Sequence record: OZ196285.1
DNA: 64,000 nt
Reading direction: 5' to 3' (one strand)
The notes below the pieces were generated by a model. It was not told the DNA's origin. It saw only the letters and a list, made by a program, of their open reading frames with translations, and searched no databases. Both the position numbers and the translations under genes were made by a program. Position 1 is the first letter of the stretch; every line of letters begins with the position of its first letter. Below, piece by piece: positions 795 to 29,844 of the stretch.

Positions 795-1108
795 TGAAAA
801 CACTGATCAATAACAAGACAGTGAAGATCACAGACTCTGGCAACTTCAATAAGCTTGTCAGAGTCTGGTTCGATAAAGACGGCGTTGAAATTGTCGGTCT
901 ATCTCTCGATGAAGACGATATCGTCAACATCAAAGAGTACAAAAACTTGACCGTACCGGGCGGGGTACACACGCTCATTGCCAAAGCCGTCGAAGGCACT
1001 GTTTACACTTCAACAGTTCTAGGTCGTCTGATATTCAATCGGAAAGACGCATCATACAAGATGAAAGAAGACCGACATCGAATTCAGTTCACTGAGAATC
1101 TGAAATGA
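794..1108 (+). CDS. Hypothetical protein
   Basis: 104-aa ORF coupled to phoH by a TAATG overlap and followed by a terminator. Confidence 0.75.
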   Translation: MKTLINNKTVKITDSGNFNKLVRVWFDKDGVEIVGLSLDEDDIVNIKEYKNLTVPGGVHTLIAKAVEGTVYTSTVLGRLIFNRKDASYKMKEDRHRIQFTENLK

Positions 1109-2612: not shown

Positions 2613-3176
2613 TTACTGTTGGTCAGATAATTTCTCTACCCTAGCATCCAATTTTTCGATTTGCGCCTTTAGCATATCTGCTTCAGAACTCGTGAAACGG
2701 TCTTCGTTAACTGCGTCTAGGCGTGTGTTCACTCTCGCCAAGTCTGCTGCGAATTCACCGTCTTTCGCATTACGCGCATCGATTTTGATGCCTAATTCTC
2801 TCTGAGATTCATGCAGTGTGGCAATGTTGGCACGCAAACTTACGTCTGCTGCTGTAGTTGTCACACGAAGAGATTCAACACTTGTTTCTAGTTTGCCGTA
2901 TGAAGCAAGCAACTGATCTTGCTTATGTCCAATCGCTGCTTGTTGCCCTTCGAGTGAAATAAGCTGCTGCGCTTGCGTTGCATTGGTTAATTTAATGTCG
3001 CCAATCTCTTGCACGATTTTAGTGTTTAGCTCAATGGTGGTAGCGCCTTGGTCTTGTAAAACTACAAGAGCCTCTTGCATCCCACCATAGCTTGTCGCTA
3101 CACTCAATGAAGATATAGATAGAGGAATAAGAATCGTCCCTACAATTGCTAAAACGCCTTGCCAGAACTTTGTCAT
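2613..3176 (-). CDS. Membrane-anchored coiled-coil protein; candidate holin (T position) or i-spanin
   Basis: One N-terminal hydrophobic helix then a long coiled coil; own TATAAATA promoter; sits after the fibre genes and converges on asiA. Confidence 0.5.
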   Translation of the reverse strand: MTKFWQGVLAIVGTILIPLSISSLSVATSYGGMQEALVVLQDQGATTIELNTKIVQEIGDIKLTNATQAQQLISLEGQQAAIGHKQDQLLASYGKLETSVESLRVTTTAADVSLRANIATLHESQRELGIKIDARNAKDGEFAADLARVNTRLDAVNEDRFTSSEADMLKAQIEKLDARVEKLSDQQ

Positions 3177-3219
3177 AGTATTGGTTCCTATGTATTATTT
3201 ACTCTTATGTCTTCAAACG

Positions 3220-3227
3220 TATTTATA
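3220..3227 (-). promoter_or_regulatory. T4-type late promoter
   Basis: TATAAATA on the minus strand, overlapping the fibre stop codon. Confidence 0.75.
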
Positions 3228-6200
3228 AGCGGAAAAGTTTCTTCCACCACGGCTTTTTAAGCTCTTGTACTTCGTTCTGAAGCGTATTGACAGTTTCGTT
3301 AAGCTCTTTAATCGATTCGATTATAAGACCGCTTAGATTGCCGTACGCGACTGATTTGATGCCATCCGCGTCGTTATTATCGGCGCGAACCGCTTCAGGC
3401 AGAACTTTCTCAACTTCTTGAGCAATCACACCCGTTTCACGCGTTGTCTTGTCTTCGTGCAATGACAATTTCTTGTCGTAAACATACCCGCCAAGTTGCA
3501 TGATCTTCTCTAGTGGATTTTCGATGCGCTCGATGTTGCTTTTCAGGCGAATATCAGAGTAAGCAGTTACGTTGCCAGTTGCAGTAAAGTGCCCTGCATC
3601 ATCGAACGTAAATCGAGTCGTTGATCCGTCACGAACATACCAGTTACCAATACCGCTGTTCAAGTCAGTGTACATGTGAGAGCCATTACAGAAGAACTCG
3701 ACATCATCACTTGAACCGAAACGCATGATATCGTTATCAGCCAAATCGATTGCTGTACGAACACTCAACGTTCCATTAACCGTCATGCTACCAGTTATCG
3801 TACCGCCAGTTAGCGGTAAGTATCCCGCGCCTGACAGAGGAGCAAAACGCGCATCAGCTTCAGCTTCTGTGTAGTAACGACCATCATGTGTATGCGAATC
3901 GTTAGCAACTGCAACAGTGATCGAAGCGTTCGCTGAACCATCGAACAAGACTGAACCACTAGCATCACCTGCTAATGAAATCGTACGGGCTGTATTCAAC
4001 TTAGTTGCTGTTCCCGCATTTCCGTTCAGTGCACCTTGGAATGTGTTTGCTAACACCGTACCAGTAGACGCTTGAAATTTGAAACTAGAAGTGTCATACA
4101 AGGCGTTACTGTTGTTATGCCAAACTACAGGATAGAACGTAGATGACGTTGAGTTAGAAACAGTTACTTTGCTTGCAGCATCTAATATTCCAAGATATTT
4201 CGCACTCAGTGCAGTAGTACCCTCGTAAATCGAGTTCGCGTACAGTTGACTGAATCTCCATGTACTTGTACCTAGAGCACCCACCCCATTCGAATGTGGC
4301 AATAGGCCATCACTCGTTATACGCACATATGCAGTTGTTGAATTACTTCTACCGGTCATTTGACGATATGTACTTGAATCGTTAATGCCCATGTAATTGG
4401 TGTGCGCGTGACTATCGTTAGCAACAGTAACGGTCAGAGTTTTGTTAGCTGATCCGTCAATCGAAACTGAACCACTTACATCACCGTTAAGCGTGATCGT
4501 ACGAGCTGTTGTCCATTTATCAGCATTCGGATGATAGTTGTCTGCAAACAATCTTTCCCATGATGACCATGTCCCGTTATTTTGACCGCGAACATACCAA
4601 GCGTTGGTTCTCCAGTCACTTGCTTGCTGCGTCTGCCACGAAACACTATATGAGTTCGTTTGAATCGCGTGATCTTGTCCCGAAGGTGCGTTACTTGCAT
4701 CGGCTCCAAGATAACGAACTGAGAACCCGCCAACATCACCTACTGTGTCTGCGTTGACTGTTGATTTATCAGCCAAGAACGCATCAAATCTATCATGCGC
4801 GTGACTATCGTTAGCAACAGTAACGGTCAGAGTTTTATTAGCTGATCCGTCAATCGAAACTGAACCAGTCGCATCGCCACTTAACGTGATCGTACGAGCT
4901 GTTGTCCATTTATCAGCATTCGGATGATAGTTGTCTGCAAACACACGCTGTGTGTTGTTTGCATAAATCTCGCCCTCTGCATACGTTGCGTCGCGAGTAA
5001 CCCAGAAAGAACGTCGGTTGATAACATGACCAGTCGTATCACTCGCAGTTGAATGCAACACACTGAATGAATCATTATCGTCATTTGCAGAGATTACAAC
5101 CGCAGCATGACCGTTATCAGGGCCCCACAATGAAAGACAGTTGTTCGAACCTGGGATTAAACCATCGCCCGGGTTTGTGCTTCTGGTAATGTACGCGCCA
5201 GTATCGAATAGTAGCGAATTAACACCCAATATAAGCGAACCCGTCATTGTATCGCCTGATTTAGACACGTAGCGAGCGTTCGATTCTGCTTCTGTGTAGT
5301 AACGACCATCATGCGTGTGCGAATCGTTAGCAACAGTAACGGTCAGCGTTTTATTAGCTGATCCGTCAATCGAAACTGAACCACTTACATCACCGTTAAG
5401 CGTGATCGTACGAGCTGTTGTCCATTTATCAGCATTCGGATGATAGTTGTCTGCAAACACACGCTGTGTGTTGTTTGCATAAATGCTACCAGTCATGTAC
5501 ACGTTATTGCTTTCTCGTGCACCGCTCATTACAAGATGGTCGGCTCCCCCAGTTCTACGCCACAACTGCCAGTCGTTCACGTCACCATCATACTTCAAGA
5601 AAGCACCATGCTGTCCGCTATCTTCAGTCATACGCAATTCAGAATCGGTGTTTGCAGTTGCATTCAAGTGAAGTAATGAGTTTGCTTTAGTGATCGTCAG
5701 ATTACCCGTCATCGAATCACCAGACTTAGAAACGTATCCCGCACCATTAATAGGCGCGAATCGTGCATTAGCTTCTGCTTCTGTGTAGTAACGACCATCA
5801 TGAGTGTGCGAATCGTTCAGAACAACAACTTCTAGTGTTTCGTTTTCAGAACCATCGATTGAAACTGAACCAGTTGCATCGCCTGAAAGACTTAGTGTTC
5901 TTGCTGTTGTCCATCTATCCGCATTCGGATGGTATGTGTCGGTGAAGAACATGCGCCAGTCTGCCCATGTGCTTTCATCAGTCGCTACACGAGTGCCAAC
6001 GTTGCCGTTATCACCGAATGCGAATTGCAAACTACGACCACCACTCGATCCCTGCCATGCATCGAAGTTCATCACTCGGTGGTATGTGCCACCTCCATGA
6101 GTAAAGCCGTCAATCGTGTTGTACTTGAAGTGATACTCAACACCATCACCGTAGTCGCTTGGTAGATAATCAACACTTCGGCTATCTTTGCGCGGTAGAA

Positions 6201-15487: not shown

Positions 15488-16936
15488 TTATACTGCGTAC
15501 CGGTCGATACCAACAGTCTTCATCATGATCTTCACTGGCTCAAGCTCGCCATCAAGTAAAGAAGTCAGGATAGATGGACTACAACCCGACACAAGTGCCG
15601 TACCTGCCTCACCCGTTTTCACTGGTACGTTGTCTAGACGACCGCGAATGTTCCAGAACGCTAGTTGCGGCATTTCGTAGCCCGCTGCTGCGTATTGAGC
15701 TTTGATAGCATCAAAGTTTGTTTCTGTGCGGCTTGGCCAACCACCACCGCATTTCGCAGTGTTGAATTCCATGTCAGACATGATCAACATCTTCGTAGGC
15801 ATTTCAGATTGTGGCAAGTTTGCACGCTGCGCACGCTCCAATAGCACTTCGAAACACTTCTGAATATCAGTGCTCATGTTCTCACCAGAACGACGCATGT
15901 TAGCAAGACGCGTTGACAGTGTATCACCAACAAGCTTGTGGAAATGTGGATCGCCTGAGAACGAAATGAACTGATCTTTGAAGATACCTTCGTTACGTTC
16001 AGCTACGTAGACACCAAGAGACATCGCTACGTCCATACAAGTTGTAACAGTGCCCTGTGAATAGCAGCTACCTTGTTCTGAGTTAATCGCACAATTCATT
16101 GAGCCAGACACATCAACAACAGGGATGATGCGCTCGTCAGACCCTTCCATGTAATTCGGAAGTGCTTTCCATTGCTGATCTGCTACACGTGAATCGCCCA
16201 TTCGTACGCTGCGAACAACGTCGTAAGGGAAGACTGCACCTGCATTGATCTTAGCTTCGCCTTTCTCAAGCTTGTTGATGTACTCACCGTAGTTCTCAGC
16301 CGCGTTACGACCGAATGCTTTCTGATAACGCGCAGACGCTACAGATGGCAACTTACCGAAGTCGATCTCGTTCCAGTTCTGTGAACACATTTTCTGTTCA
16401 ACAGTGTCAGACAGCGTAGAAATGACCTTACGCCATTGCTTCGATGTCACGCCAAGCGCCTTGATAGTGCGCTTAAACACGATACCGTTTTTACTCTTCT
16501 CACGAGGGAACCACTTCGCAGCCAGTGCGTTTTTGCCGTTCACGATTGCATTTGCCCATAGAGCAATTGCATCAGACTCAAGAGGAGTACCGAACGCAGT
16601 CACTAAGTCATCGAAACGACCTAATTCTGGCACCTTGTGCATTACAGCACGTGCAACGTCAGGGTTTTTCGCGATAAGTTCAGCGAAAATGCGACGGAAA
16701 GTACCGCGCTCACCTGCACCACCGCGCACGTCGCGAGACCATAGCAAGATACGTGTTGCTAGTTCAGGGTTTTCACCGTATGCGCGATTGAACGCATGTA
16801 CTGAATCTTTGTTACCGCGCATTGCTGCTACAGTAAAGAACAAGTTCAGACACTCGTTACCCGAAGTGCTGTGTGTAATTGCACCGTTTGCTGTACGTGC
16901 GTCGTTTGTGCTCATTGCGTTCATAAATGCTGACAT
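15488..16936 (-). CDS. DUF2828 TROVE-like/vWA protein (Ro60-related RNA-binding protein)
   Basis: T.NGA..H..S, RDVRGGAGER, GRFDDL, AAKW.PR and SVA..RY.KAF motifs; vWA MIDAS VVDVSGSM and MSDMEF. Start moved to 16936 (SD GAGGA). Confidence 0.9.
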   Translation of the reverse strand: MSAFMNAMSTNDARTANGAITHSTSGNECLNLFFTVAAMRGNKDSVHAFNRAYGENPELATRILLWSRDVRGGAGERGTFRRIFAELIAKNPDVARAVMHKVPELGRFDDLVTAFGTPLESDAIALWANAIVNGKNALAAKWFPREKSKNGIVFKRTIKALGVTSKQWRKVISTLSDTVEQKMCSQNWNEIDFGKLPSVASARYQKAFGRNAAENYGEYINKLEKGEAKINAGAVFPYDVVRSVRMGDSRVADQQWKALPNYMEGSDERIIPVVDVSGSMNCAINSEQGSCYSQGTVTTCMDVAMSLGVYVAERNEGIFKDQFISFSGDPHFHKLVGDTLSTRLANMRRSGENMSTDIQKCFEVLLERAQRANLPQSEMPTKMLIMSDMEFNTAKCGGGWPSRTETNFDAIKAQYAAAGYEMPQLAFWNIRGRLDNVPVKTGEAGTALVSGCSPSILTSLLDGELEPVKIMMKTVGIDRYAV

Positions 16937-24305: not shown

Positions 24306-24382
24306 TGGATGCGTGAGAGTGGATTCGAACCACTGACCTCCGGCTTATGAGACCGACGAGCTGACCGCTGCTCTACTCCGCA
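24306..24382 (-). tRNA. tRNA-Met(CAT), initiator-like body
   Basis: D arm and variable loop resemble tRNA-fMet; one bulged base in the acceptor stem; CCA. Confidence 0.8.
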
Positions 24383-28800: not shown

Positions 28801-28923
28801 TGGTGGAGAGTAGTGGATTCGAACCACTGACCTAAAGACCCATTCGTTTTAATGTTTGCAGCATGAATGCTTTACAGAATTCTTTTAACATTCTTTTGCT
28901 CTACCAAACTGAGCTAACTCTCC
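28801..28923 (-). ncRNA. 123-nt tRNA-like RNA with an expanded anticodon domain carrying CTGCAA (element E)
   Basis: Perfect acceptor GGAGAGT/ACTCTCC-A-CCA, canonical D and T arms, AAAGA/TCTTT stem enclosing about 53 nt. Confidence 0.8.
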
Positions 28924-28935
28924 AGAAAAAACACA

Positions 28936-29057
28936 TTGATGCGGGTGCAGGATTCGAACCTGCGTCACGATCTTATGAATGATATGCGATTTGATTGCTG
29001 AATACAAGTTTGTCAACTTGCGTTTGCTACGTGTGCTAACCACTACACCAACCCGCA
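28936..29057 (-). ncRNA. 122-nt tRNA-like RNA with an expanded anticodon domain carrying CAGCAA (element F)
   Basis: TGCGGGT/ACCCGCA acceptor, D-like arm, T arm GCAGG-TTCGAAT-CCTGC; ends CAA rather than CCA. Confidence 0.8.
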
Positions 29058-29100
29058 TCAATGTGTTCTTGTGATGCTACGAATCAACGTAGCATCCGAA

Positions 29101-29233
29101 CCTGTTTTATATTGCCTTAGCTAACTAACATAATCTGAAATCATGCGCTTTAATATAGGGAGGCGTCCCCATTCGCACAGTTAGCATAGAAAAGCTATAC
29201 ACCCATTCTTCTATCATGTCCAAGGCAAACAGG
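29101..29233 (-). ncRNA. ~130-nt nested-helix RNA
   Basis: Nested pairs CCTGTT/AACAGG, TGCCTT/AAGGCA, GCTAACT/AGTTAGC and TGCG/CGCA. Confidence 0.45.
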
Positions 29234-29301
29234 ACTATGAAAACGAGTGCGAGAAAATAGACAATCAAATTGCATTACCTCGCTAATTTATGAAAGCACA
29301 T

Positions 29302-29423
29302 TGGTCGAGTGTACTAGAATCGAACTAGTCCCACGATCTCCTAATGATATGCTAAATTGGTTGCTGAATACAAGCTTGTCAACTTGCGTTATGCTACGTG
29401 TGCTGCCACTACACCAACACTCG
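29302..29423 (-). ncRNA. 122-nt tRNA-like RNA, paralogue of element F (element G)
   Basis: CGAGTGT/ACACTCG-A-CCA, T arm ACTAG-TTCGATT-CTAGT; insert nearly identical to element F. Confidence 0.8.
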
Positions 29424-29440
29424 ACCAATATGCTTTCTAT

Positions 29441-29591
29441 TTCTTTTAAATGTGCGCTACTTGCACGACGACTGAGCGAATCTTAACTCAGCTAGTTTTT
29501 GTTCGATGTGTCCGCGGCTAAGCTTCTCACCTGCTTGTCAGAACTTACCTGACCCCATGTATTCATTGCGTCTAGCGCACATTTAAAAGAA
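29441..29591 (-). ncRNA. ~113-nt structured RNA inside a perfect 19-bp inverted repeat
   Basis: TTCTTTTAAATGTGCGCTA/TAGCGCACATTTAAAAGAA; inner GTCAG/CTGAC and CTGAG/CTCAG hairpins. Confidence 0.6.
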
Positions 29592-29604: not shown

Positions 29605-29826
29605 TAAAGAGCAGAAACGATAAGACTAGTCTGTTTATTCAAGAGTGTTCATCTTCAAGAAGAGGCGAAAACGATGAACTTAGTTCGCTTAATCAACTGT
29701 GTTAATCTTAGCAGCATTTTCGCTGAAGTCAAACACTTTTCAAATTTCTTTCATCGAATCAAGAGTTTGTGTTGCTATCTCTCGACTCGATGAAATACAT
29801 TCTACAGGCTTTTGAACGTAAGTCAA
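29605..29826 (-). promoter_or_regulatory. rrn-like leader with tandem promoters and boxA
   Basis: TTGACT-16-TAGAAT (29799-29826), TTGACT-16-TAAGAT (29705-29732), hairpins, then TGCTCTTTA (29605-29613). Confidence 0.65.
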
Positions 29827-29844
29827 ACACTTTTTTCAATCTTT

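Follow-up and report, generated by a model that had tools for sequence, protein, structure and literature searches.

What are two tRNA-shaped genes, each with an arm more conserved than the stems that carry it, doing at the head of a phage tRNA cluster? The window analysed here, 64,000 nucleotides (nt) of sequence record OZ196285.1, comes from the KVP40-like Vibrio phage F86; 800 bases surrounding the two genes are 100% identical to F86 and 75–82% identical to some 50 KVP40-like vibriophages. Its tRNA cluster, with 25 tRNAs found by ARAGORN on the minus strand between 20.9 and 29.4 kb, has at its upstream (5′) end elements G (29302..29423, minus strand) and F (28936..29057, minus strand), paralogues of 122 nt that match a family sequence profile with nhmmer E-values of 1.6e-24 and 3.3e-24, respectively. 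Neither is called by ARAGORN or by the Rfam tRNA model, and the Rfam collection, searched at gathering and at permissive thresholds, contains no family for them, returning only a weak tRNA-Sec match and a spurious YrlA match. We consider it likely, with a probability of roughly 0.7, that F and G are an unpermuted, tRNA-shaped variant of the Y RNAs whose inserted arm would bind the phage's own Ro60-like protein; the binding and the function are what we infer, from a conserved fold with a conserved arm, from homologues with the element order of YrlA, and from a genomic coupling to the gene of a Ro60-fold protein.

Read from 29423 to 29302, G consists of a 7-bp acceptor stem (CGAGUGU/ACACUCG, 7/7 paired), a D arm, A26, C27-G28, a 48-nt arm (29349..29396, minus strand), the hairpin AUC/AUUAGGA/GAU, C42-G43, UGGG, a T arm with the stem ACUAG/CUAGU (5/5 paired), the acceptor 3′ strand, and the tail ACCA. 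The arm, a candidate Ro-binding module, is built of UAGC, AUAAC, the hairpin P1 (GCAAGUU-GACA-AGCUUGU, 29370-29387), AUUCAGCAACC, AAUUUA, and GCAU. F, read from 29057 to 28936, has the acceptor UGCGGGU/ACCCGCA (7/7), the T stem GCAGG/CCUGC (5/5), the tail UCAA, an anticodon-like loop of 8 nt (AUUCAUAA), and a 46-nt arm (28984..29029, minus strand) with P1 at 29004-29021 and the motif UUCAGCAAUC at 28993-29002. The two elements share 4/7 positions in each acceptor strand and 2/5 in each T-stem strand, as against 16/18 in the D arm and 42 identical positions of 46–48 nt, with two indels (about 90%), in the insert. The initial annotation, made from the sequence alone, had described F and G as paralogous 122-nt tRNA-like RNAs whose acceptor and T stems differ yet stay paired and whose ends are CAA and CCA, respectively, all of which was borne out on re-reading, with every quoted string in place. 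Its nearly identical insert of about 60 nt is indeed nearly identical but shorter, since the part given as 'GCAUAUCAUU...GAUCGUG' lies outside the true insert and holds the 3′ strand and the inner half of the anticodon-like stem-loop (in the order C27-G28, insert, AUC-loop-GAU-C42-G43).

A structural scan of 12 vibriophage loci yielded five families of 111–126-nt tRNA-like genes with inserts, and after pattern scans of IMG/VR and metagenomic data the F/G family comprised 47 distinct members, drawn from vibriophages, a cyanophage, estuarine and aquatic contigs, and many tRNA-rich rumen or gut contigs of 100–300 kb. In some rumen contigs F-type and G-type copies stand side by side, and the duplication is therefore old. 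All 47 members parse as a full cloverleaf with the arm between nt 28 and 29 of the anticodon stem. The common order is a 7-bp acceptor, U8, an invariant D arm (GGUGUA..GG.A.CAC), A26, C27-G28, an insert of 41–55 nt, three nt pairing with N39-41, a loop of 7–9 nt, C42-G43, U44-G45 plus 2 nt, the T arm, the acceptor 3′ strand, and an N-C-N-A tail.

The initial annotation had also proposed selection on both the fold and the insert sequence, and the homologues, which are not recent copies of one sequence, support it. Among 45 aligned members the acceptor occurs in 20 sequence variants with 99.4% of the cells paired, falling to 41–55% when the partner strand is slid, and the T stem in 16 variants with 100% paired. 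RNAalifold, run on an unsupervised MAFFT alignment, recovered the acceptor, D, and T helices with compensatory changes at 11/16 pairs; the agreement goes far beyond chance. The inner pairs of the anticodon stem also covary across the 47 members (GAA/UUC 30 times, AUC/GAU 14 times, and AGA/UCU, UGA/UCA, and GAU/AUC once each), further members adding ACU/AGU and UCC/GGA; P1 is a hairpin of 6–9 bp with 17 different sequences, all paired. The script that placed P1 and the inner anticodon pairs required pairing, so that their 100% value is partly built in; the evidence for them is the number of distinct paired variants together with the fixed position. About 35 positions are invariant across the family. 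Read off the sequences, G or A at position 15 changes in step with C or U at position 48, as in real L-shaped tRNAs, and this fits an L-shaped fold; together with a T arm, a D arm with GG, and an acceptor-like helix, it gives the family all the marks of a tRNA-like domain. Among the homologues, whether from related or from distant phages, all retain both the insert and the paired stems, and an insert-free allele was sought without success.

By its pairing pattern, the insert forms an arm that leaves the anticodon stem at a three-way junction. Its first four nt, UAGC, are invariant; it contains P1, after which comes UAC or AUUCAGCAAYC, and its end is GC(R)AU, the conserved motif after P1 being UUCAGCAAYC. 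Within the window, motif counting gave three exact matches and 16 with one mismatch versus 9.5 expected, which is not significant. A second insert hairpin (ACAAU..AUUGU) is seen in the minimum-energy fold of one rumen subgroup only and is not kept in other groups, and an alternative helix, CACGGAA/UUCCGUG, is likewise confined to one rumen subgroup. The anticodon-like loop behaves differently from that of a decoding tRNA. It has 8–9 instead of 7 nt in 14/47 members, F included, and its triplet shifts between close orthologues: G has UAG in F86 and AGG in KVP40, and F-type members have CAU, UCU, UCC, and others. U33 and R37 are kept while the loops diversify fast; G-type loops follow xUxxGGx, with G36-G37 always present, and many F-type loops follow xxCAUAA. 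It may be speculated that two ancient paralogues differing mainly in this loop could target different tRNA-recognising partners.

The family sequence profile matched some loci as two pieces in swapped order, which are read as circularly permuted genes: L066 10111-10238 and 9992-10098, L035 1323-1445, L026 2463-2579, and L091 638-758. Their order is P1 strand, CAGCAA motif, hairpin, T arm, acceptor hairpin, D arm, CG-UAGCA, P1 strand. In the L066 copy read from 10238 to 10111, the first half is GGAUC-AUUACAGCAAC..GCAU-AUC/AUUCGGA/GAU-CG-UGGU-T arm-GUGCCCC-ACCA-(9 nt) and the second U-GGGGCAU-UGGUGUA..GCAC-A-CG-UAGCAAAAAAGUU-GAUCC, with perfect pairing across the halves in both the acceptor (GGGGCAU/GUGCCCC) and P1 (GAUCC/GGAUC). 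The corresponding pairs in L035 are GGGGCCU/GGGCUCC (acceptor) and CGAACC/GGUUCG (P1), the second, tandem copy of L066 has CCAACC/GGUUGG, and throughout the permuted set, including L026 and L091, the complementarity of acceptor and P1 across the halves is perfect or near-perfect. Unconstrained folding returns a terminal P1 stem around the T arm, the acceptor hairpin, and the D arm. The break point of the permutation is the P1 loop, and these homologues have the topology of bacterial YrlA Y RNAs. In the permuted and split tRNA genes of Cyanidioschyzon merolae, Thermofilum, and Nanoarchaeum, too, the 3′ half is encoded first, and a helix where the gene is broken joins it to the 5′ half; these genes use a bulge-helix-bulge motif and the archaeal/eukaryal splicing endonuclease to give normal tRNAs, whereas the phage genes have no bulge-helix-bulge and stand in a Ro60 context.

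Two further features of the permuted members were observed. In L066, L035, L084, and L091 the T loop reads UGCAAAU, UGCAAUU, or UGCAAGU in place of UUCGAAU and is accompanied by a D loop without the GG pair (AACAGAU, AAUAGUA), which looks like a coordinated change of the elbow contact. In L091 the linker joining the acceptor strands carries an insertion of about 170 nt (about 843-980, plus strand) with terminal inverted repeats (AAAGCAACTTC...GAAGTTGCTTT).

The permuted RNAs start 20–30 nt past the stop codon of a 476-aa DUF2828/DUF7788 gene. Adjacency to such a gene is found in L026, L035, L066, L091, L073/L090, and L121; the L073/L090 members are unpermuted and lie about 100 nt upstream of the gene, and in L121, the cyanophage BUCT-ZZ01, the gene is followed by tRNA-Met, an F-type RNA (3081-3196), and an Asn(GUU)-type RNA (3211-3327). 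Between the RNA of L073 and the start codon of its Ro-like gene (about 2040-2018, minus strand) there is a hairpin, UUAGAUUC-AGCA-GAAUCUAA, which carries the AUUCAGCA motif and may be an autoregulatory binding site in the mRNA leader. The window has its own member of this protein family, a 480-aa product encoded at 15497..16936 on the minus strand, the strand of F and G, with the Pfam domains DUF2828 and DUF7788, assignment to PHROG 850 ('RNA-binding protein'), and 42% identity to the L026 copy. Among the matches listed, 40/40 F/G-bearing phage records carry the Ro-like gene, always about 12 kb away. The F/G family is genomically coupled to this kind of protein, which the window also encodes.

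The protein of the window has no sequence-level match in PDB, and Pfam gives DUF2828 and DUF7788 instead of TROVE. Its AlphaFold model, based on 36 homologues, has a predicted local distance difference test score (pLDDT) of 80.5 and a predicted template modelling score (pTM) of 0.78, and its nine best PDB fold matches are all Ro60, aligned over the full length with E-values from 3e-9 to 5e-5 and template modelling (TM) scores of 0.44–0.57; they include Thermus phage phiLo Ro60 (9KOP/9L5Y), D. radiodurans Rsr (2NVO), and Xenopus Ro60 (1YVR, 1YVP, 2I91, 9NEP). The model combines a ring of HEAT-like repeats with a vWA domain in which D275-S277-S279, the DxSxS metal site, are invariant. As modelled, the protein has a Ro60 fold of the DUF2828/DUF7788 branch, and it is proposed as the partner of F, G, and their neighbour E, described below.

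The protein family counts 711 phage records, and some of its mycobacteriophage members bear the name 'Ro-like RNA binding protein'. In mycobacteriophage Rose5, what follows the Ro-like gene matches the Rfam YrlA model over its full length (36 bits, E=1.5e-5). A corresponding gene order is seen in Aeromonas phage phiAS5, whose tRNA cluster holds three unannotated small RNAs (L124 11060-11009, 10943-10880, and 10746-10642, minus strand), each beginning with a stem strand followed by (G/U)UUCAGCAA(A/U)C. The first two are preceded by a promoter-like site, TTTACA-17-TA..AT; the third has a T arm in permuted order, and the other two, lacking any tRNA-like domain, are queried as YrlB-like. The recurring unit is thus stem P1 plus UUCAGCAAYC, placed where YrlA has its presumed Ro-contact motif.

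Like YrlA-type Y RNAs (Rfam RF02553; Chen et al. 2014, PMC4201824), the F/G family is a tRNA mimic with a T arm, a D arm, an acceptor-like helix, and an apparent 15:48 co-variation, has a separate stem/internal-loop module with a short conserved motif, and in the homologues listed above lies beside a gene for a Ro60-like protein; the permuted homologues additionally share the YrlA element order, directly after the Ro-like gene. F and G themselves differ in being unpermuted, with termini at a real 7-bp acceptor stem bearing an NC(N)A tail. P1, their Ro-type stem, has a hairpin loop of its own and splits the anticodon stem, complete apart from this, at 28/29, which leaves an extra anticodon-like hairpin, their motif is UUCAGCAAYC where YrlA has GNCGAAN0-1G, their partner belongs to the DUF2828/DUF7788 branch of the Ro60 fold, and their genes lie in a tRNA cluster 12 kb off. 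The comparison shows F and G to be conserved tRNA-shaped RNAs with a conserved extra arm, homologous to the permuted YrlA-like RNAs.

Several points weigh against the proposal that F and G are Ro-binding Y RNAs. An end-paired stem with a Ro site, the product of permutation in YrlA, is present in the permuted homologues and absent from F and G. The GNCGAAN0-1G motif was not seen in members read by eye, no systematic regular-expression scan having been made (for instance, GUCGAACC of L035 does not fit). The RF02553 threshold of 69 bits is missed, the F/G region scoring 29.1 bits, which reflects a spurious combination of the T arm of F with the D arm of E, and the permuted homologues 23 bits, although even the mycobacteriophage YrlA reaches only 36 bits. 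As score, motif, and (for F and G) topology all fail, F and G fall outside the Rfam YrlA family. One rumen subgroup (the UACAAUAUCAU type) lacks the CAGCAA motif. The Ro60-like gene of the window lies 12.4 kb from F and G, on the same strand and not adjacent, and no Y-like RNA was found beside it. Part of the RNA-protein linkage could be indirect, because Ro-like genes tend to neighbour tRNA clusters, and the flanks covered for the rumen contigs do not reach a Ro-like gene. Finally, the expression and processing of F and G, Ro binding, and a downstream effector are predicted steps of the proposal.

E (28801..28923, minus strand), which begins 12 nt downstream of the 3′ tail of F (spacer 28924-28935), is a tRNA-Asn(GUU)-like gene with a CCA 3′ end that matches the F/G profile at E=6e-4 and the Rfam tRNA model at 57.6 bits with a 48-nt insertion. 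Its module of about 47 nt is related to the F/G arm, with the hairpin GAAUUC-UGUAAA-GCAUUC followed by AUGCUGCAAAC, and sits after position 37/38, not 28/29; the anticodon-like loop AUGUUAA is a perfect Asn loop. Judged by these similarities, E probably belongs to the same RNA set. In tRNA-Pseudo-3 of KVP40 (L001 1440-1551) and in the Asn(GUU)-type gene of BUCT-ZZ01 (L121, see above), the module interrupts the anticodon stem itself, and the loop of the body is a perfect CUGUUAA. The KVP40 record names the orthologue of E tRNA-Pseudo-4 and two related genes tRNA-Pseudo-3 and tRNA-Pseudo-5, leaving F and G unannotated, while phi-pp2 and phi-ST2 annotate these genes as tRNA-OTHER, Cys, Asn, or Phe. 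The KVP40 pseudo-tRNAs and the long tRNA-OTHER genes, which stand in the same cluster of tRNAs, are related to E, F, and G as orthologues or paralogues, but are labelled as pseudogenes or as odd tRNAs without a function. The F86 record annotates E and F as tRNAs and places a coding sequence (CDS) over G (29248-29487, plus strand).

If F and G are indeed functional, stable, noncoding Y-like RNAs, both would be transcribed at the head of the tRNA cluster, excised, and matured at their ends by the tRNA machinery, i.e., RNase P, 3′ trimming or exonucleases, and CCA addition. This route is proposed because they keep the acceptor/T minihelix, the D/T elbow, and the NC(N)A tail; mycobacterial YrlA is a substrate of RNase P and of the CCA enzyme, and KVP40-type phages encode a CCA-adding enzyme. 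The arm of 46–48 nt, projecting from 28/29 with a GC/GC closing helix, an A-rich 5′ linker, the hairpin P1, and the 3′ motif UUCAGCAAYC, would serve as a binding platform for the Ro60-like protein (15497-16936). The tRNA-like body would act as an effector or mimic module tethering Ro60 to an enzyme that handles tRNA or RNA, host PNPase for example, and the outcome could be RNA quality control, decay, or repair during infection. Recruitment of an effector is suggested by analogy with Ro-Y RNA-PNPase complexes and with the Ro60 of phage phiLo, which binds its own Y-like RNAs and host PNPase (PMC12135203); in a Listeria phage, abundant noncoding RNAs lie upstream of an Rsr-like gene (PMC12282133). 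A further elaboration, in which the unpermuted form is bifunctional and couples Ro60 to tRNA metabolism, seems unlikely on present evidence. It could take the form of on-demand excision, the Ro-bound arm being removed and the anticodon-stem nick sealed by a phage nick-sealing RNA ligase, so that F, G, E, and the Pseudo-3-type RNAs would constitute a Ro-guarded tRNA reserve uncuttable by anticodon nucleases. Alternatively, the CCA-ended RNA might be charged or passed to tRNA repair enzymes, bringing Ro60 to damaged tRNAs.

The inserts could instead be intervening sequences of a new, protein-spliced kind, F and G being precursors of decoding tRNAs; an endonuclease would cut at G28/U and U/N29, the nick in the duplex would be sealed by a phage RNA ligase, and the permuted genes would mature via a circular intermediate, as the permuted tRNA genes of the red alga Cyanidioschyzon do. 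Removal of the arm would restore the anticodon stem exactly, the module-bearing sister genes (KVP40 Pseudo-3, the BUCT-ZZ01 gene, and E) keep the perfect Asn loops described above, 'enigmatic introns' have been reported for megaphage tRNAs, and KVP40-like phages encode the CCA-adding enzyme and RNA ligases. Against splicing stand the variable length of the loops, the 'anticodons' that change between close orthologues, and an insert more conserved than the exons, the reverse of what is seen in protein-spliced introns. On inspection, three helices meet at the junction with linkers of 2–3 nt, a topology that led to the rejection of a bulge-helix-bulge splice motif. Nor is there a group I core (at least 200 nt) in an insert of 46–48 nt, or a match to any ribozyme family in Rfam. 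A self-cleaving ribozyme or a K-turn at the junction (hammerhead CUGAUGA/GAAA; K-turn GC-RAU-GA) was rejected by inspection, because positions 29–31 show Watson-Crick covariation and the GA is absent from the Vibrio copies. Two IMG/VR scans for the exact arm-less junction, of the rumen and Vibrio types, gave 0 and 6 chance matches, none of them tRNA-like, and thus no insert-free allele; beside the rumen loci no gene for a splicing or repair enzyme was found, only homing endonucleases, ThyX, ClpP, a methyltransferase, and Band-7 proteins. The long linker in the acceptor loop of one permuted homologue (about 170 nt, in L091) and the linkage to Ro are also difficult to reconcile with splicing, which we hold to be unlikely. 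With loops that differ in both length and sequence, and with every search for an insert-free allele empty, F and G do not qualify as ordinary decoders; they lack the uninterrupted 5-bp anticodon stem, the constant 7-nt loop, the stable anticodon, and the finder call of canonical tRNAs.

A role that would do without Ro60 is that of tRNA-scaffolded decoys or sponges for host tRNA-directed enzymes, such as the anticodon nucleases of defence systems, TrmD, TilS, and the like, the arm blocking entry into the ribosome. The retention of U33 and R37 in rapidly diversifying loops, the constant G36-G37 of G-type loops, and the CAUAA of many F-type loops would suit it, and phage tRNAs are known to counter tRNA-cleaving defences; direct evidence is lacking, and the conservation of the arm, the permuted versions, and the linkage to a Ro-like gene would all be left unexplained. 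Such a role is compatible with Ro binding and not exclusive of it, but as an explanation independent of Ro60 it appears rather improbable. That F and G are decaying pseudogenes with junk insertions, or that the region codes for protein, is hardly credible, even though the KVP40 record uses the name tRNA-Pseudo, the F86 record has its CDS over G, and ARAGORN passes over both elements. Compensatory changes occur in four helices and in marine, freshwater, and rumen phages, about 35 positions are invariant, the F/G duplication is kept in rumen contigs, and the homologues are not recent copies of a single sequence; instead of the relaxed constraint, broken stems, and missing covariation of a tRNA pseudogene, the family has the covariation described above. 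The substitution pattern is RNA-like and not codon-like, and the hypothetical CDS over G is very likely spurious.

Other phages provide partial parallels to these Y-like RNAs. The tRNA genes of Lak megaphages contain 'enigmatic introns' that are unexplained (Devoto et al. 2019), and, as described, the two cases have in common large phages and tRNA genes broken by highly conserved short inserts of unexplained processing; no Ro60 link has been proposed for the Lak inserts. Rumen phage contigs of the present set contain other interrupted tRNA-like genes (L016 1160-1319 and 612-771; L021 1686-1837), Tyr GUA-like and Thr UGU-like. Their inserts, 70–90 nt long and placed at 37/38, belong to another conserved type, in which AAAAC(C) comes after a hairpin, and may be akin to the Lak introns. 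Species 1 and 2 of T4 (rnaC and rnaD) are stable RNAs of about 120–140 nt with unassigned function in a T4-type tRNA cluster, and rnaC has a T-arm-like hairpin. Homology to F and G was rejected: the T4 region was folded, and neither the sequences nor the predicted folds of rnaC and rnaD revealed a cloverleaf with an arm at 28/29, and the family profile search was empty.

Upstream of G, tandem repeats of about 90 nt (29640-29830) each carry a promoter-like TTGACT hexamer on the minus strand. Two sigma-70-like matches lie within them (29705..29826, minus strand), TTGACT-16-TAGAAT (10/12) and TTGACT-16-TAAGAT with TG; they are consensus matches only, and their number is not above the shuffled expectation. 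On their sequence, these two matches are a candidate start for transcription of a unit running G>F>E>tRNA. A 9-bp hairpin, GAUGCUACG-UUGAUU-CGUAGCAUC (29062-29085, minus strand), precedes F by about 5 nt; it repeats the family-invariant CGUAGCA and was not seen in the single other vibriophage checked (nt-1, L012). The F86 record has a further hypothetical CDS in the spacer between G and F (29125-29268, minus strand), and Rfam recognises a tRNA at 24310-24381 (minus strand, 53.5 bits) that is absent from the ARAGORN list.

Y RNAs that mimic tRNAs, including those of phages, were already known; the form proposed here, an unpermuted Y-like RNA that ends at an acceptor stem, is encoded within a tRNA cluster, and has its partner in the DUF2828/DUF7788 branch of Ro60, would be new. 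The literature on phage tRNA introns, KVP40 pseudo-tRNAs, and DUF2828 (the KVP40 genome paper and a 2020 Ro60 review were not covered) offered no explanation of these genes, nor was a link of KVP40 pseudo-tRNAs or DUF2828 to Y RNAs found. Genes of KVP40-type phages that since 2003 have been entered as tRNA pseudogenes or overlooked would acquire a function under this proposal, which would also extend Y RNAs to T4-type vibriophages, a cyanophage, an Aeromonas phage, and rumen phages. One RNA family would occur in both topologies, with the Ro module inside the anticodon stem of a tRNA and as a YrlA-like form broken at the hairpin loop of the module, which is the intermediate predicted if Y RNAs arose from tRNAs. 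The bifunctional logic, if true, might also explain the 'enigmatic introns' of megaphage tRNAs. P1 plus UUCAGCAAYC would be a compact candidate Ro-binding module for the uncharacterised DUF2828/DUF7788 family of more than 7,500 proteins, and the role of a phage Ro60 would become directly testable in a tractable phage-host pair.

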